A stretch of DNA of 64,000 bases from Takakia lepidozioides (lineage: Eukaryota; Plantae; Bryophyta). The stretch lies in contig CM060733.1 of the NCBI GenBank assembly GCA_030704615.1, positions 19,592,001 through 19,656,000 of the forward strand. Direction: 5' to 3'. The notes below the pieces were generated by a model. That model was not told where the DNA came from and made no database searches. It worked only from the letters and a program-made list of their open reading frames with translations. The position numbers and the translations under genes were made by a program. This document shows positions 4,472-47,756 of this stretch, one piece after another; within the stretch, counting starts at the first letter, position 1, and every line of letters begins with the position of its first letter.

Positions 4472-6682
4472 TTACGCGGGCACCCATGCTGTTGAGAAAC
4501 TGACATTGTGGCCTTTCCATGTGAGGAACAGGACGTCTTCATCCTCATCTTTCCTCAGCCTCCAACAACCCGAGTGCTCCCCCAACATGTGTTTGAGCTC
4601 TCCCATCACCTCCTGACTAAATGGAATCATCCGAAACTGAGCTTTCTTCATGCGCTGCATCCATCTGTCTTTGCCCTCCACCCGCTCGATTCTTTGTCGT
4701 CCCTCACAGGCGATAATGTTTTCTATTCTGTTGGCGATCTCACCCTCATAGTGTACTCTCTGGTCACTGTTCCGGGGTAAGAGTGCATCCAAAGCATCAA
4801 ATGGGATCCACAGGTAGTTGAAGGCCGCCTTCAATCTCGTGACAATCTTGGGGGAAGTAAGGTTGGCATCCTCATCTGTTAGAGTCACGACAGCAGGGTT
4901 GAGATTTCGAACTAATCTCAACAACTTGTCACGAGCGCAGGAAGATGGATCAACCCCCTCATCGGCCACATAGTGCAGTCTGAGCAGGCAATTTACAGCA
5001 AAGACCTCCCCATCTCGCACATCGATCGTGGAAGGATCTAGCAGCTCACAATCTTGAGGAAGCAACTGAAACTCGAAGGGAACATTCTTTAGGCGAGCGA
5101 ATTTGGCCAGGCGGTGGAGCAATTGTTCATAGCTGACTTCCAGTAAGGGAGGTACCTGGGATTGTGCGACGCACACGCTCAGACGAAAATGGGGAGGCCC
5201 CTCGGCTCTCTCAGCGAAAGCCTCAATCAAAGTGGGCCATTGCATGCAATGACTGGTGTTGAAATCGAAAATGTGCACCCTATCCTTCCCCCTAGAAGCT
5301 TCCAAAATTGCTCCATTTGCTGCTATGTACCCAAAACGGTACCATGGCATCACATCAACGTAGTTCGTGAGCTCCATCACAGTAGTTATTTTGCTGCAAT
5401 TCAGGGGCCCCTGAGGCTGTGGAAGCATATGAGGTGTAAATTTGGCAGCTCGTGATATGAGGGCCCTAAGGAAGCAAGCCAAGAGTTTTTGGTTCGGTTC
5501 CCCATCCATCGATGCAATGTTGCTGATTACCCAAGTGATTTGCTGGGCGGATTGCACATCGTTGGCCTCCAGAGCCGATGCACAGTGGACAAGGAGTTGT
5601 TCCATGGTGTTCAATTCGCGAGAGCCCACCAGGCTCCCCAAGCCCCGCATCCCAAGCGCTTGCAGAGGCCGTGTCTCATCATCTATGGGGACTCTATGAA
5701 GTCTCTCGATGTCGGGAAATGTGGTGGCATTGGCCAACACGGGTGCTATCTCCTGTGCCCCGAACCTCTCGAAGATATCCTGATTGATCGGGAACGATCT
5801 TGGATGGACAAGATGATTGACGGGCTGGAGTGCTCCATTGATGCCTTGCAAGTTCCCTCGCGAATCGACCTCCGTGACTTCCATCCCGGATGCATGTCGA
5901 CCCTGTGCTTCCCCATGATTTCCCATCTGTGGTTCTCCCATTGTTTCCGAACGGTCAGGAGAAGATATCATCGTGCTTGCTTCTTGCTGCTGGCACTCAT
6001 GACTGGCAGCCAAATCGACCATTCCGTGTTCACCCTTCTGGGTCGACAACCAGCGCTCTGTCTGCCACTTTCTAGGAGAGTTCCTCAGCACCTCCCTCAG
6101 AGGCTCGTCGATGGGTGGGCGACTCTTCGATTCGCTCATAGCGGGTGCCTCACTGCGGTTGGCCATTTCCAATGCATCCCCTAGAGTATCTAACTGAGGA
6201 CCACAATTTTCAGTTCCCTTGAGAGTGTTCTGCTGCCTTAGCACCTCCGTCCGCGTTTGTGCCATCACTGGACCTTCACGTTTGCGCCATTGGGACGCAT
6301 CTGCTGTCTGAATGGCGCCAGGATCATCAAAAAACTCACACACCGGAGTGTTGTACGAGAGGTGCTCAGGAACTTGGCGACTATATTGGAATGGGATTTG
6401 ACTATTCCTAGCTGTTTCAAATGGCCTTGAACCCCTTAATTTTTCGAGCTGGGTCCAAGGAGCACCATCATGCTGAGAGTTGAGAACCTGCATGCTTGCA
6501 AGATCGAAAGGCCGGTGAACAAGATTTTTCTCCATATCTGACGCCATGAACAGTGGCCGCCTACTTCTCCTTGCGGTAAATATCGAACCCAGAATAGTTG
6601 CACTATCTCGATAGTCAGCTTTTACATCCAGTCCATTGGCAGTCTCAAATGCAGCACATTTTCGACCATTTTCTTCCTCCAT
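4472..6682 (-). CDS. GRAS family transcription factor, SCL32/SHR-like clade, intronless, 736 aa with a long N-terminal extension
   Basis: LHRI MEQLLVHCASALEAND, PWYRFGYIAANGAILEA, VHIFD (VHIID), HCMQWPTLIEA, PFEF, IENIIACEG..RIER, and SAW-like WKGHNVSFSTAW. Confidence 0.92.
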   Translation of the reverse strand: MEEENGRKCAAFETANGLDVKADYRDSATILGSIFTARRSRRPLFMASDMEKNLVHRPFDLASMQVLNSQHDGAPWTQLEKLRGSRPFETARNSQIPFQYSRQVPEHLSYNTPVCEFFDDPGAIQTADASQWRKREGPVMAQTRTEVLRQQNTLKGTENCGPQLDTLGDALEMANRSEAPAMSESKSRPPIDEPLREVLRNSPRKWQTERWLSTQKGEHGMVDLAASHECQQQEASTMISSPDRSETMGEPQMGNHGEAQGRHASGMEVTEVDSRGNLQGINGALQPVNHLVHPRSFPINQDIFERFGAQEIAPVLANATTFPDIERLHRVPIDDETRPLQALGMRGLGSLVGSRELNTMEQLLVHCASALEANDVQSAQQITWVISNIASMDGEPNQKLLACFLRALISRAAKFTPHMLPQPQGPLNCSKITTVMELTNYVDVMPWYRFGYIAANGAILEASRGKDRVHIFDFNTSHCMQWPTLIEAFAERAEGPPHFRLSVCVAQSQVPPLLEVSYEQLLHRLAKFARLKNVPFEFQLLPQDCELLDPSTIDVRDGEVFAVNCLLRLHYVADEGVDPSSCARDKLLRLVRNLNPAVVTLTDEDANLTSPKIVTRLKAAFNYLWIPFDALDALLPRNSDQRVHYEGEIANRIENIIACEGRQRIERVEGKDRWMQRMKKAQFRMIPFSQEVMGELKHMLGEHSGCWRLRKDEDEDVLFLTWKGHNVSFSTAWVPA

Positions 6683-13782: not shown

Positions 13783-16107
13783 CTAGTTTTCGCTGGCATC
13801 CTTGGACCTTTGGCCAAATCCCTTCGGACCAGGCCGCCCAGCTTTGACAACTTCAAGATCCTTCTTCTTCGCCTCTGCAGTTTTTGCTTGTGTGTCTCTC
13901 TCCCTCTTTTCCAAGAAGTCTTGCACCGAAAGATAGACTACCTGTTTTCCCAAAGGAAACAAGCCTCAGCTGCCTCTCCCTTTGGTAACACACAAAGCTA
14001 AATCAAATGTGGAATAAATCTACACATGAATAAAAAGGTCGTTCAGTTCCAGTTAGCATCATATTCAGAGGACTTGATTCCTTCCGCGCCATCTTTTCGC
14101 ATAACATGCAAGTACGATAGCCCTTACTGCTTCCAAGAAGAATAATCTTTAAAGACATTCCTACAACCAAACCATCAGTTCACAATTTCTAACAGCCCCT
14201 CAAAGAGCCCTCAAGAGGTGATCTGTTAGCCAGCAGGAAAGGTCAAGGAGCTCTGCCTCAAACATTGAATTCATGGAACTTGGATGTTACAGCTGTACCT
14301 TTGTCCAGATGAAAACTAAGAAAAGCAGACACCTGGATGTGTCTGCTTCCATCGGTGAAATGTGAGTCAAGAAAGAAAAAGAAAATGTACTTATAAGACC
14401 TCGTTTGCAGTAGCCTTGTGGCCATGGACCCAATTGAAAAAGAGAGAGTGCAAGAGAGGACAGAGTAGGAAGACAACAACCAATGAACTTGAACCCACCA
14501 TATGCAAGGTTCACGGCAACAGCCAAGGAAGAATGCTGTGTAGGAGAGGAAACATACCCCAACTGTCAGAATGGAGAGGCCCAAGAAAGCTGCAATGAAA
14601 AGAAAGGATACCGCACCATTGCCAACTGTTTCTACCACTTCTTCTGACCCAGCTTCAACAACTTCATCTGCAAGTGCAGCTCCAGATTGTAACAACCCCC
14701 ACAGTGCAGCACCTCCTAAAGCCCTCTCCAATATCTGAAAGGCATACAATAAGAGCATTCCCATTAAGTACATTCTTGTTTTCAAAAATGAAGTGTTAGG
14801 CATACCATACTCTTTGTCTGTGGCTGTAGCTGGTACACCCAAGTACCCAAGAGTAGTGGGACTTAGGGTGATAACAATTAGTTCGGGCTTTCCAAATTCC
14901 TCTAGAAAGCCCTTCACACAAGCATCAATCTGCACGAAGTTATTTTCCCAGCAGGGCCAGGGTTTAAGGCTCAGCCTCAAGATTCATTCAAAAGAACGCA
15001 ATCTTAAGACGTTGTTTGCCCAAGCCTTGTGGCCATAGACCAAAGAGAGAGAGAGAGAATGTACTCATGCCGTTCCCTGCGAGAGAATGAGAAAGGATAA
15101 CTCAATCTACATTGCTGCTCAAAGACACGGCCACCTCATGAAGGTAAATGGCCCCATCAAATGCTGTATTTTCTTATTCAACTCAGCTTACCACAAATCC
15201 AAGTGGATATCTTTTGTTCTCATAACTAAACGTCTTTGCGAGCAGCATCTGAAAAGCCGGTAGTATTTCCCTCCACTCTCAAAAGGCAGGAGACCATCTA
15301 AGCAGCGATGGGGCAGAGGTTGAATGAAATTGCAGACTTGGGACTTGGGTTGCCCATTATGCTATTACTAGAATCTGGCAAAATTTCACATAGTAATCAA
15401 TGACAAAATTGATAACATGTGCGTCTTTCAGCCTTCACTACCTCATCTTAGTGTGTATTGTAAGTTATAGGCTAGAAACCCAACATTGTAGTCCACAAGT
15501 GCCCCCTGTTACATGTATTATGAACTTCCACACAAAAGAACTGTGCCAAATCACTTCTCATCATCAGAGCAGATTGAAAGCCAGATTATAGCACAGCAAT
15601 CCTTGAGCATTCTTGGACCAGGCCCAAAAGATTCATACATGAAAATATTTTACCCACTCATTTCCTAAGGATTCCGCCCTAACCCAGAACGAAAAACATT
15701 TGCATCGCCATTCAAACTCTGTTCTACCAATCTTGCAGCATGATAGCCAAAACAATAATGCCAATCAGGAGGGTCGGGTATAAAACCTGTACTTGGACTT
15801 CCAAAGGCCTCGTCACTGTTTCAATTGAACCTCTGCACCTGACTCTCATATCCATAGTGCTAACAGTGAATTGGCTCTGCATAGCTGGGGAACCGTGTTC
15901 AGATCTGAGGCTCCCACAACGCAACGGCCTCGACCGAGCTGTCCTGCTATGACTGCGTGACGCGGTTGGCGAAAGAAGAGAGGGACAAGAAGACAGTTGA
16001 AAAGAGACCAATTTAATAGCAGGAGATGGAGGATGGAGGGCAGCTCCAGGAACTAGCATGGAAAGTGGTAGAGAATGGCCCAGCCCCACTCTCAAGGTGC
16101 CATCCAT
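13783..16107 (-). CDS. Small putative plastid-targeted single-pass membrane protein, uncharacterised (exons ~15787-16107, 14558-14734, 13783-13941)
   Basis: Ser/Arg-rich transit-like N-terminus, AALA motif, TM segment FLFIAAFLGLSILTVGVVYLSV, basic tail ending RPGPKGFGQRSKDASEN*; phase-0 GT-AG junctions. The first-exon donor is uncertain. Confidence 0.65.
14855..15070 (-). mobile_element. Deleted copy of the LINE 3'-end family (a short tail fragment also at ~14388-14432)
   Basis: QIDACVKGFLE-coding segment and TATGGCCACAAGGC / GAGTACATTC(TC)n tail on the minus strand. Confidence 0.7.
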
Positions 16108-16918
16108 TCTGAGAGCCAGCTTACAAAACCGGATTTTGATGTCACCCAGAGCCCCCCAGGGCTGTGGGATTCCCAGTGTCCGCCAGTGATCCAAACCAAG
16201 TAGCGTCCCTAGCCTGGATGGTTGCAGCCCCAAACAAATGAAAAGAGGAGAAACAAGACAAGAAAAGACAAATTGCTCGAGTTCTCCTTACAGACACTTC
16301 AACTAACCAAAAAGATAATCCAAACATGCACAGAAGCAAGACAGAGCTTAAAAATGATGGATTTGTTGACTTCCTCGAGGCTTTCAAATGAGAATTCTTT
16401 GGGGCATTCCTTCCAGTCTGAAGTCCACAACTAGTTGATGAAATGTTATCGGGAGAATCCCACGTCAGTAGAAGTCCAGCGGGATGAACAACCTGCTGGC
16501 GGATGAAAAGTCGCCCCTGAGGCTATGAGGCGATATGGAGCATTCAGCTCCTTCTTCACTTCAGGATACAAGTCCTACAGACTGCGTGTTGACGTTCAGA
16601 ATGGAAGAGGGTAGAGTCTGATCTTCCCTGGCAATCAGGAAGGAACATGTCGTCCCCCTGTCGAGACACTTAAATGAGGAATCTGCCCCGTGCACCCTGG
16701 CCTTTTATCAGAACCCAACTAATTAGATGCTCTTACTCGGGCCCTCAGCCCTTGCTTTCTTCCTATCTGGTGCGCTAGAGGAGTGAAATAATGGAAGCAG
16801 ATGTATATGGGGAATTGCTTGGAATCGGCCTCTGGGTAGGTGCCTCACAGGACAGGAATTTGTTGATTTGAAGTGATGCAGCTCAAGGGAGAGAACGAGA
16901 GAGTGGGTTGTGGACAAG

Positions 16919-19489
16919 ATGAACTGCATTACTATGTCTCTCCGCACGGAACACTCTCTGCCCAGGACCACAGGGTGCCCAGATAACTACAAATTGTCGC
17001 GCAGGGCGGTTAAGTTTCAAAACTGGAGTCAGACGCAGGCATTTGTTGAGCATGAGAGCCGAGGAAGGGGCACGGACCTGGCCACGTCCACCATTAGCAC
17101 CGGTTCGAATGGAAGGCTAAGAGAAAGATCAACGGGGGAGCCAAGCGACAAGGGCAACCGTGGAATCAGTGGGGATGTGAGCAAACTGTGCAAGGAGGGG
17201 CGATTGAATGAGGTATTGACCATTCTGGATTCTGTGGAACAGAGAGGCTTCGATGCGTATTCCGACTTATGTGCCCGTCTCTTGAAGGAGTGTGCTCAAG
17301 GCAAAGCCCTCGCATATGGCAAGGTTGTCCATGCCCACTTGGTTAGAAGTGCTTTCAAGCCAGTCATCTTCTTAGGGAACATCCTTGTTAGCATGTATGT
17401 GAAGTGCGGGAGTCTTGCGGATGCACGCCAAACGTTCGACCAAATGCCTGAAAGGAATGTTGTCTCTTGGACTACAATGATTGCAGGACTTGCTCAGGAA
17501 GGGCATTTTGCGGAGGCATTTGAACACTTTCGGCAAATGCAGCGAGAAGGCGTGAAGCCTGACAAAGTAACTTTCATCAGCGTCCTCAAGACATGTGTGA
17601 ACCCAGCAGCTCTGGAACAGGGCAAGTGGGTACATGCGGGCATTATCGAAGCTGGATTTGAGTCAGATGTCCGAGTAGGGACTGCCATTGTCAGTATGTA
17701 TTGCAAGTGTGGGAGCGTAGTGTATGCGCGCCAAGTGTTTGACAGAATGGGTAACAAAGATCCGGTCTCGTGGACTGCGATGATAGCAGGGTTAGCTCAG
17801 CATGGTCTTGCCGAAGAGGCTTTTGAAGTCTTTATGCAAATGCAAAGAGAAGGCATGAAGGTAGACAAGGTCACTTTCACTAGCATTCTCAACGCATGTG
17901 CCAGCCCAGCAGCTCTGGAACAGGGCAAGCAGCTCCATGCGGGGATCATCAAAGCTGGATATGAGTCCGACGTGTGGTTGGGGACTGCCCTTGTCAGTAT
18001 GTACTGCAAGTGCGGGAGTGTCGTGGATGCCTACCGAGTGTTCATCAAAATGCCTGAACGAAATGTGGTCACTTTCATCAGCATCCTCAATGCATGCTCC
18101 AGCCCAGGAGCTCTGGAACAGGGCAGGCGCTTGCATGCGGGCATCATAGTAGCTGGCTATGAGTCAGATGTCCGAGTGGGAACTGCCCTTATCAGCATGT
18201 ATTGCAAGTGTGGGAGTGTGGAGGATGGCCGGAAAGTTTTTGACAAAATGCCTGAACGAAATGTGATCTCATGGAATGCGGTGATTGCAGGGTCTGCTCA
18301 GAATGGTCATGCTGAGGAGGCTTTTGAACTCTTTCAGCAGATGCAGCGAGAAGGGATAGAACCAACCAAGGTCACTTTCATTGTGATCCTCACCGCATGT
18401 TCCAGCCGAGCAGCCCTCGAAGTGGGCAAGTGTGTCCATGCACACATTATCAAATCTGGATTTGAGTCAGATATTCGGGTGGGTAATGCCGTCATTGACA
18501 TGTATGCCAAGTGCGGGATTGTGGAGAATGCAAGGTTAATGTTTGACAACATTCTTGTACGAGACGTGGTTTCATGGAATACGATGATAATAGGATATGC
18601 CCAACATGGGCATGGTAAGGAGGCCCTCCAACTCTTTCAACAGATGCAACAGGAAGGGGTGAAGCCAGACAATATCACATTTCTTGGTGTTCTCTCTGCA
18701 TGTAGCCATGTGGGGCTAGTGGATGAAGCCCATCATTATTTTCTTTCTATGAGTCGTGATCATGGCATCACACCAACAGGGAAGCACTACGGTTGCATGG
18801 TCAACCTTCTTGGCCGGGCAGGGCAGCTAGTTGAGGCAGAGGATTTTATCAACAAAATGTCATTTGAAGCTGATGCTTCAGTCTGGGGGGCCTTGCTTGG
18901 TGCCTGCAGAGTACATGGCAATGTGGAAGTAGCAGAACGTGCCGCAGCATGGGTGCTCAAGTTGGAGCCACAAGATGCTGCAGGGTATGTGCTGCTTTCA
19001 AACGTCTATTCTGTGGCTGCCAGGTGGGATGATGTAGCAAAGGTGAGAAAAGTGATGGAGGCCAGAGGCCTGAAAAAGGATTTGGGGTGCACCTGGATTG
19101 AAATCAACAACACGGTACATACTTTTATTGCAGAAGACAGATCACACCCACAAACTGAGGAGATCTATGCTGAGTTGGAGCGATTGACTAGGCAGATGAA
19201 GGAGGCAGGATATGTACCGGACACGCACTTCGTCTTGCATGATGTAGATCACCAGCAAAAGGAACAGGCTCTCTGCCACCACAGTGAAAAGCTGGCCATT
19301 GCTTTTGGGATAATCAGCACGCCTCCTGGGACACCTATCCGCATGATGAAGAACCTGCGGGTATGTGGTGATTGTCACACTGCCACTAAGTTCATCTCCA
19401 AAATTGTTGGGAGAGAAATTATTGCGAGGGATGCCAACCGCTTCCATCGATTCACATATGGTGTATGTTCTTGTGGGGAATACTGGTGA
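16919..19489 (+). CDS. PLS-class PPR protein with E1-E2-DYW deaminase domain (organellar C-to-U editing factor), intronless
   Basis: Repeated P-L-S motifs; E domains; KKDLGCTWIE box; HSEKLA and NLRVCGDCH zinc/catalytic motifs; ends CSCGEYW*. First ATG at 16919. Confidence 0.95.
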   Translation: MNCITMSLRTEHSLPRTTGCPDNYKLSRRAVKFQNWSQTQAFVEHESRGRGTDLATSTISTGSNGRLRERSTGEPSDKGNRGISGDVSKLCKEGRLNEVLTILDSVEQRGFDAYSDLCARLLKECAQGKALAYGKVVHAHLVRSAFKPVIFLGNILVSMYVKCGSLADARQTFDQMPERNVVSWTTMIAGLAQEGHFAEAFEHFRQMQREGVKPDKVTFISVLKTCVNPAALEQGKWVHAGIIEAGFESDVRVGTAIVSMYCKCGSVVYARQVFDRMGNKDPVSWTAMIAGLAQHGLAEEAFEVFMQMQREGMKVDKVTFTSILNACASPAALEQGKQLHAGIIKAGYESDVWLGTALVSMYCKCGSVVDAYRVFIKMPERNVVTFISILNACSSPGALEQGRRLHAGIIVAGYESDVRVGTALISMYCKCGSVEDGRKVFDKMPERNVISWNAVIAGSAQNGHAEEAFELFQQMQREGIEPTKVTFIVILTACSSRAALEVGKCVHAHIIKSGFESDIRVGNAVIDMYAKCGIVENARLMFDNILVRDVVSWNTMIIGYAQHGHGKEALQLFQQMQQEGVKPDNITFLGVLSACSHVGLVDEAHHYFLSMSRDHGITPTGKHYGCMVNLLGRAGQLVEAEDFINKMSFEADASVWGALLGACRVHGNVEVAERAAAWVLKLEPQDAAGYVLLSNVYSVAARWDDVAKVRKVMEARGLKKDLGCTWIEINNTVHTFIAEDRSHPQTEEIYAELERLTRQMKEAGYVPDTHFVLHDVDHQQKEQALCHHSEKLAIAFGIISTPPGTPIRMMKNLRVCGDCHTATKFISKIVGREIIARDANRFHRFTYGVCSCGEYW

Positions 19490-21284
19490 TCGTAAGTGAA
19501 ACTGGAAATAAAGCTAACTGCCCTCTACAGGAGTCTTATTTCAGTGGCTTTCAAGTGTCGTGGAACCCGATTGGAAAGGTCTGTTCAAGTGGAGTGTGGC
19601 CCAGAGCAATGGTACGGGACCCTCCCTGCCGCATTAGGTGTTGATGTCGTCTCCTCTTGTTTTCAAGCATTGGATGATTTGTGTTTCTATATCTGGATCC
19701 AGATGAGAGATTTACAGGTGTATACTATAATCTAGCACTGGCCTACTTGTCAAAATAGTTTGAGCATAGCATCTCCCATTGGGCAAGCAATTCACCACGC
19801 AAGAGAACAGATGGTTTCATATCATAAGGATTCAAGAAATGCTTGATTGCGTATTCCTCAGTTTCGCTAGGACAGCAACCATGTATTCTACTTCTAGACA
19901 CCTGATCTTTAGGAAAATATATCGTCTAGGGATGCCCTGCCCTTCATGGATATGCTCATTATTTGTCTTGACATTGGCACACTGGGTGACACGTACAATT
20001 GAAGGTATATCCAAGCAGTGCAAATTTGAGATGATAGGTTAGGGATCTATATGGTGTTACTTGATCTCATTGAGATTATGACATCCACAAATAGGGATCA
20101 CCCAGCTTTTCCAGTCAAACTGTTGTATAGGTGGTCTAAGTCATGCTAGAATACAAATTGCGGATGCCTGCACTGCTGCTTTAGCTCCTAAGACAGATGT
20201 GACACATGGCTTTCCAGGGACCACCCACAGTTGACTTTCAGAGCAGAGACACAGTGAGTCATTACATTTCCTACACTAACAGGGTGCTGGGTGCATTTTT
20301 GGTGCAGGGGTGATCTTTGCATGCAAACATGAGACTCTGACAGTGAAGGAGATAGCAATGTCAGAGCACGATGAACTGTGACAGACCTTCTACCCAATAT
20401 ATGGGCAATGCGCGAACCCCTCATTTGAACCTCTCTCTTGGCAATACTATGAGCCACTGATGGAATTGTGCTCGGTTGCAGTAACTACCACTTTTTGGAG
20501 TCCCTCCCTCCAAACCACCTCTAATTTGTCCCCTGAGAGCTATAAAGTTTAGTCATTTTTGGTTCCATGCAGAAACCAACATGCCCACTTTATGATCGCA
20601 CTATGGCTGTGGCCTGTGTTGCTGAAGTGGCAAAAGAGATAAGCACAACAATCACCATTACGTTGAGGTGAGTCTTGCTTGACAAAAAATTCAACCCCTA
20701 GTCAGTCAGCCTTCACCTCTGACTGTAGAGGGATCATGTATGTTGAAGTTATTTCAATGAACAATCTTGAACTTCGAGTAACATGTAAATGCGCAGTCAG
20801 TGATGCCAACTCCCAAGACATTCTTTCATGCATGCTCTGCTTTCATCTCTCTTTCGGACATGCTTTTCTCTTTGTATGTAGCTTGTTTACCAGCAATCCC
20901 AACAAGTACAAACCTTGTGCTTGAACTGGAGAAAGCAGTGGCCTTCCATACTGCAATTGAGCCAAGCAATTAAAATGAACTTGGGACCAATGTGGCTTGA
21001 CACCCGAAGGTAATTGAGTTTGGATGGGTATTCAGTGCCAGCCTATAGTGCCATATTCTATGCTCGTAGTCAGGCAAATGTATGGAGTTTGGCCTCCTCC
21101 CTACAATATGTAGCATGAGATACTGTCGAGCTTTTCACAGTGGTGGCAGTGCGGAAATTCCTGTTGTTCCTCCCAGAATGCTGCAGATCTCAGCCACATA
21201 ATAGGGCCCCAGTATCAGCCTAGCCATCTCTTCAGGAGAAACATGGATTTTGTCAGTTAGTGGCAAATTGTCTCTACCATGAAT

Positions 21285-23906
21285 CTAGGCATTCAACTTG
21301 ATGCAGCTGTGACCTTCATTTCCTTTGTTGCCCAACCTTGCCAGTGGTACTTCAGCAGAAGGGTGCTGTGAATCACACTTCAGAAGGGATTTTGCTGCAC
21401 GTTCTGCTACCTCCACATTGCCTTGAGTTCTGCAGGCACCAAGCAAGGCCAACCACACTTCTGCATCTGCTTCAATCAGTGTTTTGTTGATGAAGTCCTC
21501 CGCCTCTTCTAACAGTCCTGCACGACCAAGAAGGTCAACCATGCAGCCCAAATGTTCTACTGTAGGATTGAGACCATGCTCTTGACCAATGGAATCAAAG
21601 TAGTGATGGCCTTCATCCACTAGGCCCACATGGCTACATGCTGAGAGAACACTCATAAAGGTAATACCATCTGGCTTGAAGCCTTCCTGTTGCATTTCTT
21701 CAAATAGCTGCAGGGCCTTCCTACCACACCCATTCTCAGCATATCCTGCAATCATTGCACTCCAGGAGACCACATTTCTTTGAGCCATATTGTCAAACAC
21801 TTGCTGTGCATCCCTCAGGCTACCAGATTTGGCATACATGTCAACAAGGGTAGTCTCTAAAAGTATATCTGGCACAATTCCAGCTTTCACAATGTCTGCA
21901 TGGACCTCTTTTCCTTTTCCCAAGGCTCCTAGGCTGGCACATGCCTTGAGCACACAAATTCCCGTCACATTGTTGGGAATCACCCCTTCTTGTACCATTT
22001 GCTCATAGATCTCCAAAGCCTCCCTACCACACCCATGCTGGGCATATCCTGCAATAACCGCACTCCATGAGACCACATTTGGATTCAAGCCTTCCTGTCG
22101 CATTAGCTGCACTAATTGGAAGGCCTCCCTGCCACAGCCATCCTGAGCATATCCGGCTATCATCGCATTCCATGAGACCACGTCTTGTTCAGCCATATTG
22201 TCAAACACTTCACCTGCATCCCCCAGGCTTCCACATTTTGCGTACATGTCAACAAGAGCATTTTCTAGAGTCATATCTGATGGAATTCCAGCTTTGATGA
22301 TGTCACAGTGGACCTCTTTGCCCTTCTCAAGGGCTCCCAGGCTGGCACATGCATTGAGAACGTAAATGAACGTCACCTTGTCTGGGGGCACCCCTTCCCT
22401 AACCATCTGCCTGTACATCTCAAAAGCCTGCATACCACACCCACGCTGAGCATATCCTGTGATCATCACATTCCAGGACACCACATTTCGTTGAGCCATA
22501 TTGTCAAATACTTGACGTGCATCCCTTAGGCTCCCTGATTTTGCATACATGTCTGCAAGAGCATTCTCGAGAATAACATTAGGCGGAATTCCAGCTTCAA
22601 GAATGCCAGCATGGACCTCTCTGCCCTTTTCAAGAGCTGCAAGGCTGGCACACACATTCAGAATGCAAACATAAGTGACCTGGTCGGGGGTCACCCCTTC
22701 CAGTGTCATTTGTTCATACATCTCCAAAGCCTCTTTACCACATGCATGCTGAGAATATCCTGTGATCATGGCATTCCATGAGACAACATTTCGTTCAGCC
22801 ATATTGTCAAACACTTGATGTGCATCCCTAAAACTCCCACATTGGGCATACATAGCAGCAAGGGCTGTGTCTAGAATGATGTCTGGTGCAATCCCAGCTT
22901 TGATGATGTCCACATGGACCTCTCTGCCCTTTTCCAGGGCCCCCAGGCTAGCACATGCCTTGAGAACGCATGTGAACGTGACCTTGTCAAGGGCCACCCC
23001 TTTCTGTACCATCTTCTCATAGATCTCCAAAGCCTCCCTACCACAGAAATGCTTGGCATACCCTGCTATCATTATATTCCACGCAGAAGTGTCTCGATCA
23101 GGCATTTCGTCAAACACTTCACGTGCATCCTCCAGGCTCCCGCACTTGACATACATGTTGACAAGGTTGTTGAATAAGATGATGTTTGGCCTGAATCCAG
23201 TCCGGACGATGTGGGTGTGCACCTGCTTTCCCTCGGTTAGCCCTTGCTTTTTTATGCACTCTTGCAAGAGGCAGACATAAGTATACGAGTCTGCTGATAT
23301 GCCTCGTTTGTTCAAAATGCGCAAGGCCTCTTTCAGACGCCCTGCCATGCACAGTGCCCTCACTTCCCCACATTGTGATTGACCTTGTATGATGGCAGCT
23401 AGTTGTGCTTCCACCCAAGAAGGGCTCGACCAACCCTTAATCCAAAGACCCTCCTTTGTTCGCTTATTTCTGAAGTCTGGTGATCTTGAACTTCTCTGTG
23501 AAAACCACCAGGCAGCTGAGCAGCGGTAGCTTCAACCATCGCCTAGCATAGACCAGGCTACAACCAAATAACAAGGAACAAACCATGAGCAACCTACTTC
23601 CATGTTTCATCCCATACAAACACGGAAGAACAATCTAAAACCAGCCTGTTGCTGCTCTTATCAGACAGGAGAGCGAAATTGGAAACAATGACATACAATC
23701 CAGTCCACAAAACATCAACATGAGACTGACAGAGTCTTTTATGGTCTAAATGAAGATGTCTTCACCTTATTAAACCTGTTGTCCCACCACTGTGAAGGAT
23801 CGGAGAAGAAATCCTGCCATAGCTCATCTCCCGTAGGAGAACTAACACCCAGACATAGATTATTAGCAGCACTACCGCTATGAATCTTGTTGAGACGCGA
23901 TACCAT
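21285..23906 (-). CDS. PLS-class PPR protein (E1, truncated, no DYW) with an N-terminal OSB-type PDF motif; exons 23766-23906 and 21285-23495, ~783 aa
   Basis: The PPR ORF stays open upstream to a CAG acceptor at 23496-23498. A phase-0 donor AAG|GTGAAG at 23766 joins ELWQDFFSDPSQWWDNRFNK to RSSRSPDFRNKRTKEGLWIKGWSSPSWVEAQL, followed by multiple PLS triplets. Confidence 0.88.
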
Positions 23907-26109
23907 TAAACTCTCTCTTTATCTCTCTCCCTGCCACTAGGAAGCCTATTGCCCTTGGGTGGACTTGACATGGGAGTAGATAAATGTCTCTGTGACTAAA
24001 TGCCACCCTTGTGACCTCGTGCCTATGTTTGTTTTGACCCGAAGCACTCTGCTTCGGGTATGGTAGTACATCGGATTTGGTTGGAGGAAACGGAGCCTCT
24101 CCCTCTTCAGAATACTTATGTCCACGCAGGCCATTCCCTGCAGCTCCTTTGGACTGATGATCTCTGAATGATAACATCCCTACCAGCGCCTCTGCTGAAA
24201 CTGGGCAGTTGCATGCTCGGCACCTGGGCTAGGGTTTGCCCTTGTGATCAAACTTCAAACCTTTAGCCCGCTAAAAATGTGAAAATTCTCTGGATACTAC
24301 TGTTTGTCCGTTTGCAGTTTGTACTCCCCAGGGTGATTCCTGGGAACTGGACATTATGCCAGACTTAGAGCTAGACTTAGAGCTTCGTGTGTGGTTTATG
24401 GGGTGAATCCCAGGATGGACGATGTGTCCTTGAAAAGTATTTGCTCAAATTCAGGCTTGGATCATGTGGCTGAGAGCGCCATCTCCAAACTTGCCAGAGG
24501 TGAGGTGCATTGAAGGCGACAATGTCTAAGAATGCTACAAGTAGAGATTGACTGCAAAATAATCTCAGAGAAGTTCAACTTTGACTCGTTGGAGAACGAT
24601 CTAGACATTGGTGATTCTATGAGTCACTCGGGGAAGATAGTCGAGGATGGCGACTTGAAAGTGAAAGTTTCCAATCCGTTTGAAGTTCTGGAAGAGATTG
24701 CCACAAAGAGAATGGCTATGCGTGCAGGAATTGATCAATGCGTGAATGCTGCAGGATATGATTGAGCGCGCCAATCCTCAAAGTCTCCTGACACAAAGCC
24801 TACACTCGGACGATCCCCGCAAAGCTCATCAGTCCATGGTAAATTAACATTTTGGATTTGTTCGAAGCATGTTTTTAATGATTCTAACACAGACCTCCTC
24901 TGGCTGCTAGTGTTGTTGGAGAAGTGCCTAGTGCTGTCTTATCCTGACAATCATGCTAACTGATTACGAACAAGGGGACTTTCCAATTCACTTTCTGTTC
25001 GGAAGTACGTATTGTTTGATTTGAAGTTTGACTTTAGATCCTGCTTGTTCATCTGAGAAGAAATTTTACATTGAGCTTTCAGCTCATTTTGTGTAGCATT
25101 TTGTGTAGCATTTCCTCCTGTGGCTTCCTCCACAATCTCCTCCACCAGCAGACAGGAGCCGGGATGGGTGACACACCTGAGGGAACCCATCTAGTTGGAG
25201 GAGAATGACGTACGAGGGGATTTGTGACGACTGAGCAAGGTGCTGGTGGTCTTTTTGGTGTCTCGCAGAACTCGACTTGCCTCTGCCAAGAAGTCATCTT
25301 GTTCTTGCAGACACAATGATGCCTGAAAGTGCCCAAAACAATAGTTTAAGGTGAGTCTCCGAGACCTCAAGTTGTCTTCTACCTCAAGTTTAGTTTTCAA
25401 ACATACAAAAGGGTACACCATGACACAAGCTAAGGTCCTGTTTAACACTATCCACGTGTTGTGAATGTGGCCACAGTTCTAGCACGATTGCGCTCAGATT
25501 ATCGACTGGTTGATGAGGATAGGGGTTGTATCCGTTACAGATCTAGTGTTGAAAAGGCTGCCAGAATATCTGTGAGAGTAGCAAGCTGCAGAGCCGTGAA
25601 GACGACCTAACATCCTGGGTTTGCTACCCAGGAAACCAGTAGGTATCTTACCGCCTGAATTTAACATTCTAAAATTCTAGGGAGGTTAGTGAGCCGGAGG
25701 TTGTAGTTGGTCTCCTAGTAATCAGGGGCTCCTTTTTAGCCTACATTCTGTAGAGGTACACAGTGTTGGGTATTCGGAATGCAAGCATCCGGTCTCATGG
25801 AGCAGGATGGAGCAGGATGGAGCAGGATTTGTGCTTTCATCGATTCGGGGAGAAAGCTTCCTATACATTGCTTAAAGTCCTTTCTTTGTGAGAGGAGTAC
25901 CAAAATGTTTTCCACTTGATAGTGCCTTGAACCATCCAACATGTGTGCTCTGTTTGAAATGAATGGAGGTAATAGCCCACTCATTTGTTGGCCTCCCGTA
26001 CCCTCTTGCATGGAAGCGATGGTGTCATATCTGCACCACCAGAACCATGCTAATTGTTAGTAGCCTTCTCTCTTCCTCCTCTAACCAACTGAGGAATAAA
26101 ACTTTCCTG

Positions 26110-26790
26110 AACATGGTGTGACATGGGTGAGGATCTTAAGGATGATCTGAAGGGCCTACCTACCCTCGGCACTAGACTGAAACTCAGAGTGAGGAGTCTA
26201 CCTTTGAACAAAAAACAGATGTAGAGAGCAAGGGGAGTTTGTCAGTGCCCAATGCGGGGGCGGCCTGAAGACAATATCCATTTTCTGATACAATGTCATT
26301 CTCTTCAGAGAGGTACGCTGTTCAGGACCGTGAAGAATGTAGTCCCTGCACCTCTGTTCACCAACTTTCAAAATCTCAAGGCTGAGCCCAAAGCCCTGGC
26401 CCTGTTGGGGTCTAATTGCTGGGTAGCTCACACACAGCAGATTGATGCTTGTGTAAAGGCATTTCTAGAGAAATCTGGAAGGCCCAAACCAATTGTTTAT
26501 GCCGAGGTAAGTCCCACTACTGGAGTGTGCCCCTCACAAAGGTAGTGTCTGTTGTCTGTTACCTCTCCCTCCTCTCTCTAGAACCATCCTTTGGTCCTCC
26601 CTTGGATTTGATTGATATATGTAATATATATGTATGGTTTCAGAGTACCATGTCTTTTTTGCCTCTCTCACTCCCCTGATGGGCCCTCGGACCTCTACCT
26701 CTCTCTCTCTCTCCCTCCCTCGTTTCGCCCAAACTAAGCACAGAGTCTATGGCCACAAGGCTATGGCAAACATCTTATGAGTACATTCTC
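26110..26790 (+). mobile_element. Copy of the LINE 3'-end family, frameshifted
   Basis: Close similarity to 240-636 (EDNIHFLIQC..AEPKALALL..HTQQIDACVK) and the same TATGGCCACAAGGCTATGGCAAACATCTTATGAGTACATTCTCTC tail. Confidence 0.8.
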
Positions 26791-45269: not shown

Positions 45270-47756
45270 GGAGCTGTAGTGGCAGCTTCTACCCAGAAAT
45301 TAGGACTGAGACCTTTTGCTTGCAGCATACATCTAACTCTTTCAACCAAAGTCCTATTGTCCCTTTCGATGACACTATTTTGCTCTGGGGAATATAGCGC
45401 TGTAAGTTCCTGCCGAATTCAATTTTCTTCAAAGAAAGTCTTAAATTTTGCGCTTAAGAATTCTCCTCATCTGTCGCTTCTAAGCTTTCTCACTGCATGT
45501 CCTGTCTCTATCTCTGATTCCACACACAGCTGCTTGAAGAACTTGAGAACTCCTTTTGTTTTCATGCAATACAAGATCCTATAGCTGCTATGATCATCTT
45601 TAAACATGACAAAATGTTTGGAACCTCCATGCGAGTCTACATTCATTGTACACACATCAGCATGGTAGAACTCTCCAGGAGTCTGAACCCTCTCACGTTC
45701 TTCATTTACTGGAAACGCAACTCTGTGATTCTTGCCCATGACACAACCTTCACAGAACTCCAGATCTGCATTAGGGTTCAGTATTTTCATACCATCGACG
45801 ATCTCTGTTTTCTCCATTTGTTTAATCATGTCGACACTGATGTGTCCAAGTCGATCATGCCACGTTTGAAGACTTGCTCCCCCAGTTGTCACCGCCACAT
45901 TTGCTTGAATATTATCCGTCGACAATACTATGTTTGCTTGCAGAGACTCTCCCGTAATCACTTTGATTTGCAGTTTCCAAAGGTTTCTCTCTCTCACCCC
46001 AGTCATCATAAGAGGTCCCCTTCCCTGATTTGCATACAGCGTACAAGTACGCTTATCATAGATGACGATGTAATCTCTGTCTACAGCCTTCGCTACTAAG
46101 AACATATTCTTTCTGAGGTCGGGTACAAACAACACGTTGTGTATTGTTCCCTTTCTCCACTCACTTCCTGCTAGGGTTAGGATATCTATATCCCCTATTC
46201 CACTTGCCCATACTGTAACATCAGTGGCAACTTGTACTCCCCAACGATGAGATTCAATCTTCTTAAGATTTTTGAACCATTGCATCTTGTTGGTCATGTA
46301 CTCAGATGCAGCACTGTCCGAGTACCAGGATATATCGTCTTCATCGCCAACTTTCTCTCCAATTGACGTGTTGTTGTACACTGCTGCATTAGCATTGTTA
46401 AAATGTACAATCTTTACCAGATCATTGACAATGTTCTGATCAGTGTTTCTTCCTTGTGTCACTAAGCCATCATCGACACGCTCTCTTTCTTCACGATGAA
46501 ATGCAGTGGCAGCATAGGTATCGCTCATCTTAATGGATTCCACCATGTTAGCAGCAATACTCTTCGTACATTCTCGCTCCTAGTGCCCAACTTCACCGCA
46601 GGTGTTGCACCTCATTTTCTTTTTTAACTCCGCTAACCTTTCAGCTCTCTCCTTCTTCTGCTTCTTTGTCAGAAAACTTCCACCGCTTGTGGATGAGTTA
46701 TGTCTTCCTTTGACATGTTTTGTGAAGAAAGCTTTATCCATGACATCTTCCGTATTTCCTCGCGCTTTTCTCAACGTTTCTTTCTTGAGTAATCTAGATT
46801 GCAAGTTGTTCAACGTCCTCTCGGCAGCGGGTACACTATCCCATGCATCTAAGATGTTCTCATAGCTTGGAGGTAAAGTGCACACTATCTTTGCCATGAT
46901 AGCTGATTCAGTCATCTTCTCACCAAGATCACTCAACTGTTTTGCCATCAGTTCTATCTTGCTGATATAACTGGAGATGCTCTCATTTACTTCCATCTTG
47001 AGATGATACATCTTGCTTTGTAAGACATGAATGTTCTCGGTAGCATTTTGCTCATGAACTGCCACTAGTTTCGTCCACATCTCTACTGAGTTTGTGCAGT
47101 TTACCAACTGTTGCAGGTGATTCTTATCTACTCCTTGAATAATATACATGCAGGCATTGTTGTCCCTATCATCCCATTCGTCTTTATCCGAGGCCACTGC
47201 TCTCAAATCCTTCCCACTGACAAGAGACCATAGCTTCTTGGCTCTTTAGGAGAATCATCATTTGAAACTTTCATAGAGAAAAATTCTCTCCTGGAAATCT
47301 CTTTATCTGCATCACATCTTTCGATGTGGTAACAAACTCATCTTTGCTGCTATTTCCTAGATCTCTATGCTAGTTCTAGTTTCATTCGTGAACAAAATCA
47401 AGAAAGAACTCTCAGAAATAAAATTGTTCACGAAAGCACTCTCTGAATGAGCTTCAAATGTTTGTGGGCCCATAACCTGTAGAAAAACTCAAAGCACACA
47501 ATACTATCTAGAACAGCAATTCAAAGATTCAGGCAATCAAAACACACGATGGTATCATAGCACTTTACACTGCAATTCCACCATAAGGCATCAACATACA
47601 AAGAAGTTTTCAGCACCTCAAAGACTCTCTGTAGTAAGCCTAAATACTATTCGTAGTAACGATTGCTCGGGGCTGGCGGGAGTCTAGTAATTCAAAATAA
47701 TGCTGTCACTATCCATCCGTAAATAGTACGCAGTAGAAACACCTTGGCCAACTACA
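45270..47756 (-). mobile_element. Degenerate Ty1/copia retrotransposon 5' part: candidate LTR (~47478-47756), PBS, gag (UBN2, CCHC), protease, GAG-pre-integrase, integrase N-part
   Basis: PBS AGGTTATGGGCCC at 47466-47478; CNTCGEVGH knuckle; WYSDSAASEYM protease; WHDRLGH..CEGC; KLRSDR; FWVEAATTA; stops and frameshifts. LTR right boundary is tentative (TGTAG...CTACA). Confidence 0.88.

Follow-up and report, generated by a model that had tools for sequence, protein, structure and literature searches.

A PDF-PLS pentatricopeptide repeat gene with a decayed DYW deaminase in Takakia lepidozioides

The usual picture of a plant pentatricopeptide repeat (PPR) editing factor is that of a PPR tract with a transit peptide before it and E/DYW domains behind it. 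A locus of the bryophyte Takakia lepidozioides raises the question of how a PLS-class PPR array came to stand behind a PDF motif, the hallmark of organellar single-stranded DNA-binding (OSB) proteins, and of what such a protein could do without a DYW domain. The locus lies on the minus strand at positions 21285-23906 of a stretch of 64,000 nucleotides (GenBank assembly GCA_030704615.1, contig CM060733.1, positions 19,592,001 to 19,656,000), called hereafter the window. The original prediction, made from the letters of the window, joined two minus-strand exons across a phase-0 GT..AG intron and read the PDF motif as divided between them; it proposed as checks spliced sequence across the intron, a PDF-profile search, a survey of other plants for the same architecture, a comparison of the intron with OSB genes and structure prediction. 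The reading that we favour, and hold to be rather probable, is that of a nuclear gene of a PDF-PLS PPR family, encoding a DYW-less PDF-PLS RNA-binding protein whose frame has been kept by selection. The OSB PDF motif and PLS PPR proteins have each been known separately; their union in one polypeptide appears to be new.

The gene model has been established from the sequence and from assembled contigs. The putative start codon is an ATG at 23906, preceded in the same frame by a TAA at a distance of four codons, and exon 1 (23766-23906, minus strand) ends at 23766 with ...ELWQDFFSDPSQWWDNRFNK (WWDNRFNK), GTGAAG coming next. The intron ends at 23496 with ...TTTTCACAG (CAG), and exon 2 (21285-23495, minus strand) begins at 23495 with RSSRSPDFRNKRTKEGLWIKGWSSPSWVEAQL (RSSRSPDFRNK...) and remains open for 736 codons up to a TAG at 21285-21287. 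Two public runs contain parts of the window and their contigs were placed on 20800-26500. The junction is present in five contigs of one of them (run X1), as a joint 23495->23766 which skips 270 nucleotides and reads CT..AC on the plus strand, that is, GT..AG on the gene strand. One of these five contigs is identical to the window over 23143-23495 before crossing the joint, and a second window-identical contig spans 20907-21408, taking in the stop codon together with the 3' region. The gene is transcribed and spliced, and the two-exon model of the original prediction is confirmed by sequence and contig junction alike. At the 5' end, the family-level contig depth is 463 in the bin 23856-24046 and drops to 10.8 in the next one. 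From 5' to 3', the features of the gene are as follows.

23907..24046, minus strand: probable 5' untranslated part of exon 1 (contig depth, TAA)
23766..23906, minus strand: coding part of exon 1, 47 codons, in which a leader of 25 residues precedes the first PDF half
23766..23831, minus strand: first half of the PDF motif, ELWQDFFSDPSQWWDNRFNK, profile positions 3-24 (34.4 bits)
23496..23765, minus strand: intron of 270 nucleotides, GT..AG, phase 0, after WWDNRxxK (sequence and joint in contigs)
23394..23495, minus strand: second half of the PDF motif, ..SPDFRNKRTKEGLWIKGWSSPSWVEAQL.., running on into the PPR part of the same exon; profile positions 26-56 (36.6 bits)
23289..23393, minus strand: short linker (AAIIQGQ..) and N-terminal PPR-like cap (array parsing)
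21465..23288, minus strand: PLS PPR array of 17 motifs, L1-S1-(P1-L1-S1)x3-P1-(P1-L1-S1)-P2-L2-S2 (Pfam and parsing)
21363..21464, minus strand: E1 motif, aligning in full with E1 of the neighbouring PPR-DYW gene
21285..21362, minus strand: E2 stub with a deletion of ~20 residues and a remnant of the DYW start (..GHSCIKLNA), then TAG (tblastn to the neighbour)
20890..21284, minus strand: remains of a decayed DYW deaminase, distributed among three frames of the 3' untranslated region (tblastn, HMM)

The nature of the N-terminal module was assessed with the two exons kept separate, as they were in every search, profile test and simulation. No Pfam family was found in exon 1. A phmmer search with exon 1 alone (47 amino acids) against 1.84 billion proteins returned 55 matches at E<=1e-3 (best 2e-24), most of them with several matched stretches. 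The cluster of one match is named 'protein OSB3, chloroplastic/mitochondrial-like' (Lupinus), and another match bears the Pfam SSB OB fold. The matched proteins show a recurrent distance of 13 residues between WWDNR and PDFK, and an equal spacing would arise across the Takakia junction. A PDF hidden Markov model (HMM) was assembled from 46 motif instances, all from non-PPR (OSB-type) proteins, and the exon 2 match, scored on the first 60 residues of that exon, is independent of this collection. Both halves proved significant, with 34.4 and 36.6 bits against a background of 13 bits for the best unrelated piece among 1350 six-frame window pieces, and they abut on the profile with no gap. In an alignment of 67 motifs, exon 1 retains the near-invariant W7, P14, W17, D19, R21 and K24, and exon 2 retains P30, D31, F32, K35, L41, W42 and P49; the sole exception among the invariant or near-invariant columns is a K-to-R change at K33, as in several family members. 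The motif is on these grounds considered homologous to that of OSB proteins, a chance match being excluded, and the proposal of an OSB-type PDF motif split across both exons is upheld by profile and protein searches.

According to reviews, the PDF motif is restricted to green plants. Two proteins carrying it outside land-plant OSB and PPR proteins were observed, for which contamination is possible: a 286-residue product with three PDF motifs (P0041; EukProt, transcriptome of the dinoflagellate Biecheleria cincta), and a 719-residue protein (P0035; ENA contig of 588 kb) with nine PDFK-spaced repeats.

As the original prediction had remarked, the track of open reading frames (ORFs) misses the fusion and holds two separate ORFs of 55 and 709 amino acids. 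The latter, which has a GTG start, could suggest that exon 1 is a stray OSB-derived fragment and that the PPR protein starts inside exon 2, in line with the lack of PDF in the closest Ginkgo PPR proteins. This explanation is nevertheless very improbable and already contradicted: the second half of the motif sits within the PPR exon and continues the first half exactly on the profile, the junction occurs in contigs, and ~77 homologous fusions exist in other plants.

Downstream of the PDF motif, the claim of a PLS PPR array is supported by Pfam (PPR_2, 9e-107; PPR, 2e-95; PPR families from 1e-56 to 1e-107). The motif lengths are exactly 35/35/31 and 35/36/32, with no insertion or deletion, and the array shows a tandem 303-nucleotide period with 75% identity. 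The 25 Pfam families listed for exon 2 comprise PPR-type repeats, including no DYW domain and not E_motif, and a TPR_14 match covers residues 679-720 in the E1 region. With its P1-L1-S1 triplets, P2-L2-S2 and E1, the protein resembles PLS PPR-DYW editing factors such as the product of the neighbouring gene (16910-19489) and Ginkgo Gb_13190; these factors possess a DYW domain, in contrast to the Takakia gene, in which E2 is truncated and a DYW relic lies behind the stop.

The original prediction knew of no characterized protein built like this chimera, while allowing that one might have been noted. No paper was found, OSB reviews aside, which combines the PDF motif or organellar single-stranded DNA binding with PPR or DYW, and this part of the claim stands; the gene is however not a one-off but belongs to a large family of unnamed gene models. 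Three exon 1 matches have PPR arrays, namely Diphasiastrum complanatum O6H91_01G051500, Adiantum capillus-veneris GOP47_0023879 and a 1371-residue product of a 4.8-kb contig, which has three PDF motifs in one frame. A search with the Diphasiastrum PDF region gave 74 proteins, all 74 with PPR Pfam domains, from ~65 Diphasiastrum loci and, for the remainder, from four Sphagnum species and Calypogeia fissa. The survey of other plants thereby yielded 77 PDF-PPR proteins in total. These proteins bear one to three PDF motifs N-terminal of the PPR array; a DYW domain closes ~25 of them, and many models terminate before it. The Takakia copy has a single PDF and no DYW.

The Takakia gene belongs to this family by its PDF motif N-terminal of a PLS array in one polypeptide and by its phase-0 intron after WWDNRxxK. 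The models from Diphasiastrum (O6H91_01G051500 etc.), Sphagnum, Calypogeia and Adiantum have the same succession of PDF (one to three), linker and PLS array, and have in common with it the FFSDPSQW and GLWIxGW signatures and an intron inside the PDF motif, whereas identity over the PPR part is only 42-47%. The linker finds its equivalent in the LAAxVQGQ sequence that follows the PDF motifs of Diphasiastrum proteins, and the Takakia GLWIKGW signature resembles the PPR-proximal PDF type of Diphasiastrum. In a tree of 67 motifs, PPR-linked PDF motifs group together: 4 label changes suffice, whereas shuffled labels need 20.3 on average and 0 of 500 shuffles are as low. Such clustering is compatible with a single origin of the PPR-linked motifs, most forks of the tree being unresolved. 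Many of the Diphasiastrum models P0134-P0155 begin with MVQGQEQGQ.., which corresponds to the linker after the PDF; these models are probably 5'-truncated and may hide further PDF motifs.

How the PDF module reached a PPR gene can be read from its intron. In the Lupinus OSB3 gene (L001), PDF repeats 1-3 are split in phase 0 between WWD(N/K)RSNK and KNEK(G/C)PDF, by an intron gt...cag, and repeat 4 (WWDNRSNN) shows gt at the equivalent position, its acceptor not being resolved. Similarly, in Diphasiastrum P0098 (L002; longest isoform) one exon ends with ...WSDNRFTK and the next begins with KNSKYPDF. The Takakia intron shares its profile position and phase with both genes. This shared place and phase point to an exon-level duplication by which the module, intron included, was acquired from an OSB-type gene; convergence and retrocopying have been rejected as its source on account of the same shared position and phase. 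Unlike the Takakia gene, P0098 has a further intron that separates its PPR exon from the second PDF half.

OSB proteins (Arabidopsis OSB1-4, Lupinus OSB3) have in common with the Takakia gene a PDF motif of ~50 residues, with W, P, WWDNR, K, PDF, K, LW and P.W, and the phase-0 intron after WWDNRxxK. They possess an SSB-like OB fold and a C-terminal PDF motif, whereas the Takakia gene lacks an OB fold and has its PDF ahead of a PPR array. No OB fold occurs anywhere in the 64-kb window, neither exon having a Pfam SSB match, and whole OSB-type proteins match the window only at the two PDF halves, weak tblastn matches to 16126-16200 aside. The Takakia gene is therefore not an OSB gene, and an OSB gene interrupted by a PPR insertion was rejected, there being no OB fold within the window.

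Was the absence of a deaminase an original trait? At 16910-19489 on the plus strand, 2 kb away from the PDF-PPR gene and convergent with it, lies a PLS PPR gene that is intact and encodes E, E+ and DYW domains (PF14432, 2e-42). Its identity to the PDF-PPR gene is about 48%, and about 49% over the array. The alignment to this intact neighbour covers P2-L2-S2-E1, matches ..GHSCIKLNA to the ..GCTWIEINN start of DYW and carries on through the Takakia stop codon. Beyond it, EEQQEFPHCHHCEKL (21128-21172) corresponds to the HSEKL zinc-site region of DYW and FKHKVCTCWDCW (20890-20925) to its ..CSCGDYW end, in two frames other than that of the alignment across the stop codon. The lesions of the relic comprise a deletion, a stop and frameshifts. 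When an HMM of 35 intact DYW tails was compared with the three-frame pieces of 20860-21284, the relic pieces summed to 14.5 bits; shuffles gave 0.6 +/- 1.2 (maximum 8.5) and none of 1000 reached 14.5. Chained weak tblastn pieces do not discriminate the relic (70 bits, against 66 +/- 10 for shuffles, 61 of 200 being as high). With a relic behind its stop, the gene is therefore a truncated derivative of a PDF-PPR-DYW gene: judging from this comparison, the ancestor had a DYW cytidine deaminase and both E2 and DYW have since decayed. 'DYW-less', as the protein had been described, holds for the reading frame, which contains no DYW, but not for the gene's history, since it is not primarily DYW-less.

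The profile scan of the window revealed no clear PDF motif ahead of the neighbouring PPR-DYW gene. At 16126-16200 (plus strand), 700 nucleotides upstream of this intact ORF, there is a weak match to the second PDF half (KPDF..9 residues..LW..P; 13 bits, E 0.005 among 1352 pieces) with profile-like spacing, which two OSB-type proteins also match weakly by tblastn. It may be a decayed PDF exon of the neighbouring gene.

The fate of the remaining frame differs from that of the deaminase. In simulations, an intact DYW drops to the score of the relic only after about 40-50% of its sites have been substituted, and under neutral decay both coding exons remained stop-free in 0.9% of the trials with 5% of sites substituted and in 0.05% with 10%. 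Because an open frame so rarely survives simulated neutral decay, selection appears to have maintained the truncated PDF-plus-PPR frame after the loss of the deaminase, unless paralogues have restored it by gene conversion. A less probable explanation, albeit the main rival and one to be taken seriously, is that of an expressed pseudogene which became useless after the loss of its deaminase and is drifting, its promoter and splice sites having not yet decayed. It would fit with the destruction of E2 and DYW, with a very large family subject to turnover, in which many Diphasiastrum models likewise end before DYW, and with a possible upstream ORF overlapping the start codon. However, the 783 codons contain neither stop nor frameshift, all 17 PPR motifs have their exact lengths and the conserved PDF residues are intact; the frame is thus preserved while the adjoining 400 nucleotides have decayed to near noise, and an equal neutral decay would leave it open in fewer than 1 of 1000 trials.

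What the protein might do can be approached from its parts. Its family would consist of organelle RNA-binding or editing factors with one to three OSB-type PDF modules before the PPR array, and in the Takakia member the 17 PLS motifs and E1 would be preceded by a leader of 25 residues, a single complete PDF and a short linker. If the truncated frame is indeed kept open by selection, its product would act as a DYW-less, sequence-specific RNA binder. With no deaminase and a damaged E2, an RNA binder or a recognition subunit is the most likely role, and the candidate functions would be site recognition for a deaminase supplied in trans, or RNA protection. A PPR tract reads RNA from the N-terminal to the C-terminal motif in the 5'-to-3' direction. 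By the PPR code, the P and S motifs of the Takakia array are predicted to read approximately U,U,A,U,C,U,U,C,A,A,G. Placed 5' of the PPR footprint, the PDF would contribute an affinity of a non-specific kind for single-stranded nucleic acids.

Structure predictions, run on natural homologues and not on the spliced Takakia protein, agree with a separate N-terminal module. For the PDF and first PPR motifs of a family member (pLDDT 86.5), the model consists of a compact PDF module, a low-confidence linker and PPR helices, in this order; the PDF module alone reaches a pLDDT of 90.1 and a pTM of 0.74. The predicted fold begins with a helix and ends with another, and short strands lie between them at WWD, FKH and LW. 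The confident model is thus that of a small domain of the helix/three-strand/helix type with many conserved tryptophans, and the linker between it and the PPR array is probably flexible. A PDB sequence search and Foldseek gave no solved relative of the PDF (best VIA-align Z 3.2), which does not prove that its fold is new. In plan, the protein is reminiscent of maize PPR4, in which a generic RNA-binding module (RRM) precedes a sequence-specific PPR tract (PMC9459714). The resemblance is not one of homology: the RRM fold is unrelated to PDF, and PPR4 belongs to the P class and acts in splicing, not editing.

The PDF might instead bind organellar single-stranded DNA, in transcription bubbles, R-loops or nucleoids, and tether the PPR tract for co-transcriptional processing or recombination surveillance, a reading which we regard as unlikely. 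The PDF is the single-stranded DNA-binding element of OSB1, and OSB1 and OSB2 prefer single-stranded DNA over double-stranded DNA or RNA (reviews PMC6963530, PMC4166229); in the model of a family member, moreover, the module is joined to the array by the low-confidence, probably flexible linker. On the other side, an N-terminal PDF adjoins the RNA 5' of the footprint, so that extra RNA affinity is the simpler explanation, and the Takakia copy has no deaminase to deliver. The preference of OSB proteins for single-stranded DNA over RNA neither proves nor excludes such a coupling (PMC4166229).

Several points weigh against a selected RNA-binding protein, the reading favoured here. Nucleic-acid binding by PDF-PPR proteins is predicted, and OSB proteins have been reported to prefer single-stranded DNA to RNA. 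The damaged E2 is a motif needed by angiosperm E-type factors. Concerning expression, the two runs are merely guessed to be RNA and their contigs attest presence rather than level or full length; they were placed at 90% likeness, so that some of the five junction contigs possibly derive from paralogues, and part of the contig depth falls within the intron and upstream of the gene. The start codon is putative, as would be any targeting peptide, and the leader is short, with 25 residues against 40-70 in the Sphagnum and Calypogeia members. Were transcription to start upstream, an out-of-frame ATG near 23971 (minus strand) would open an ORF of ~31 codons, at about 23879-23971, which overlaps the main ATG at 23906 and may interfere with the start. 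Finally, the open frame could be owed to gene conversion from the numerous paralogues, with no selection acting on the Takakia copy itself.

Elsewhere in the window, an intronless ORF of 736 amino acids with a complete GRAS domain (Pfam 1.4e-100) occupies 4472-6682 on the minus strand, and gag and pre-integrase pieces of a Copia-type retrotransposon (Retrotran_gag_2, gag_pre-integrs, Pol_BBD) were found at 45467-47206, also on the minus strand. Two related ORF pieces with ..QIDACVK.FLE.. occur at 26150-26550 and 14258-14980, and on the one at 26252-26545 the contigs of both runs reach a very high depth (7677 and 2030). Probably these pieces belong to a transcribed repeat present in many copies, which may be the tail of a non-LTR retroelement.

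A broader scheme can be sketched, although we give it little credence: in seedless plants, RNA editing and processing would be organized co-transcriptionally through PDF modules that anchor PLS PPR factors on single-stranded DNA, in organellar nucleoids or at transcription complexes, and DYW-less copies under selection, the Takakia one among them, would be recognition subunits working with a deaminase in trans. Were the latter true, it would represent a division of labour so far characterized in flowering plants. The PDF occurs on PPR proteins of liverworts, mosses, a lycophyte and a fern as well as in the Takakia genome, inherited with an OSB-type intron. In Takakia, the PDF-plus-PPR part has apparently been kept after the loss of the deaminase, which suggests that it has a function of its own. 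A conserved N-terminal PDF would extend the RNA-editing machinery of plant organelles by a new functional element, and is a candidate add-on for designer PPR editors.

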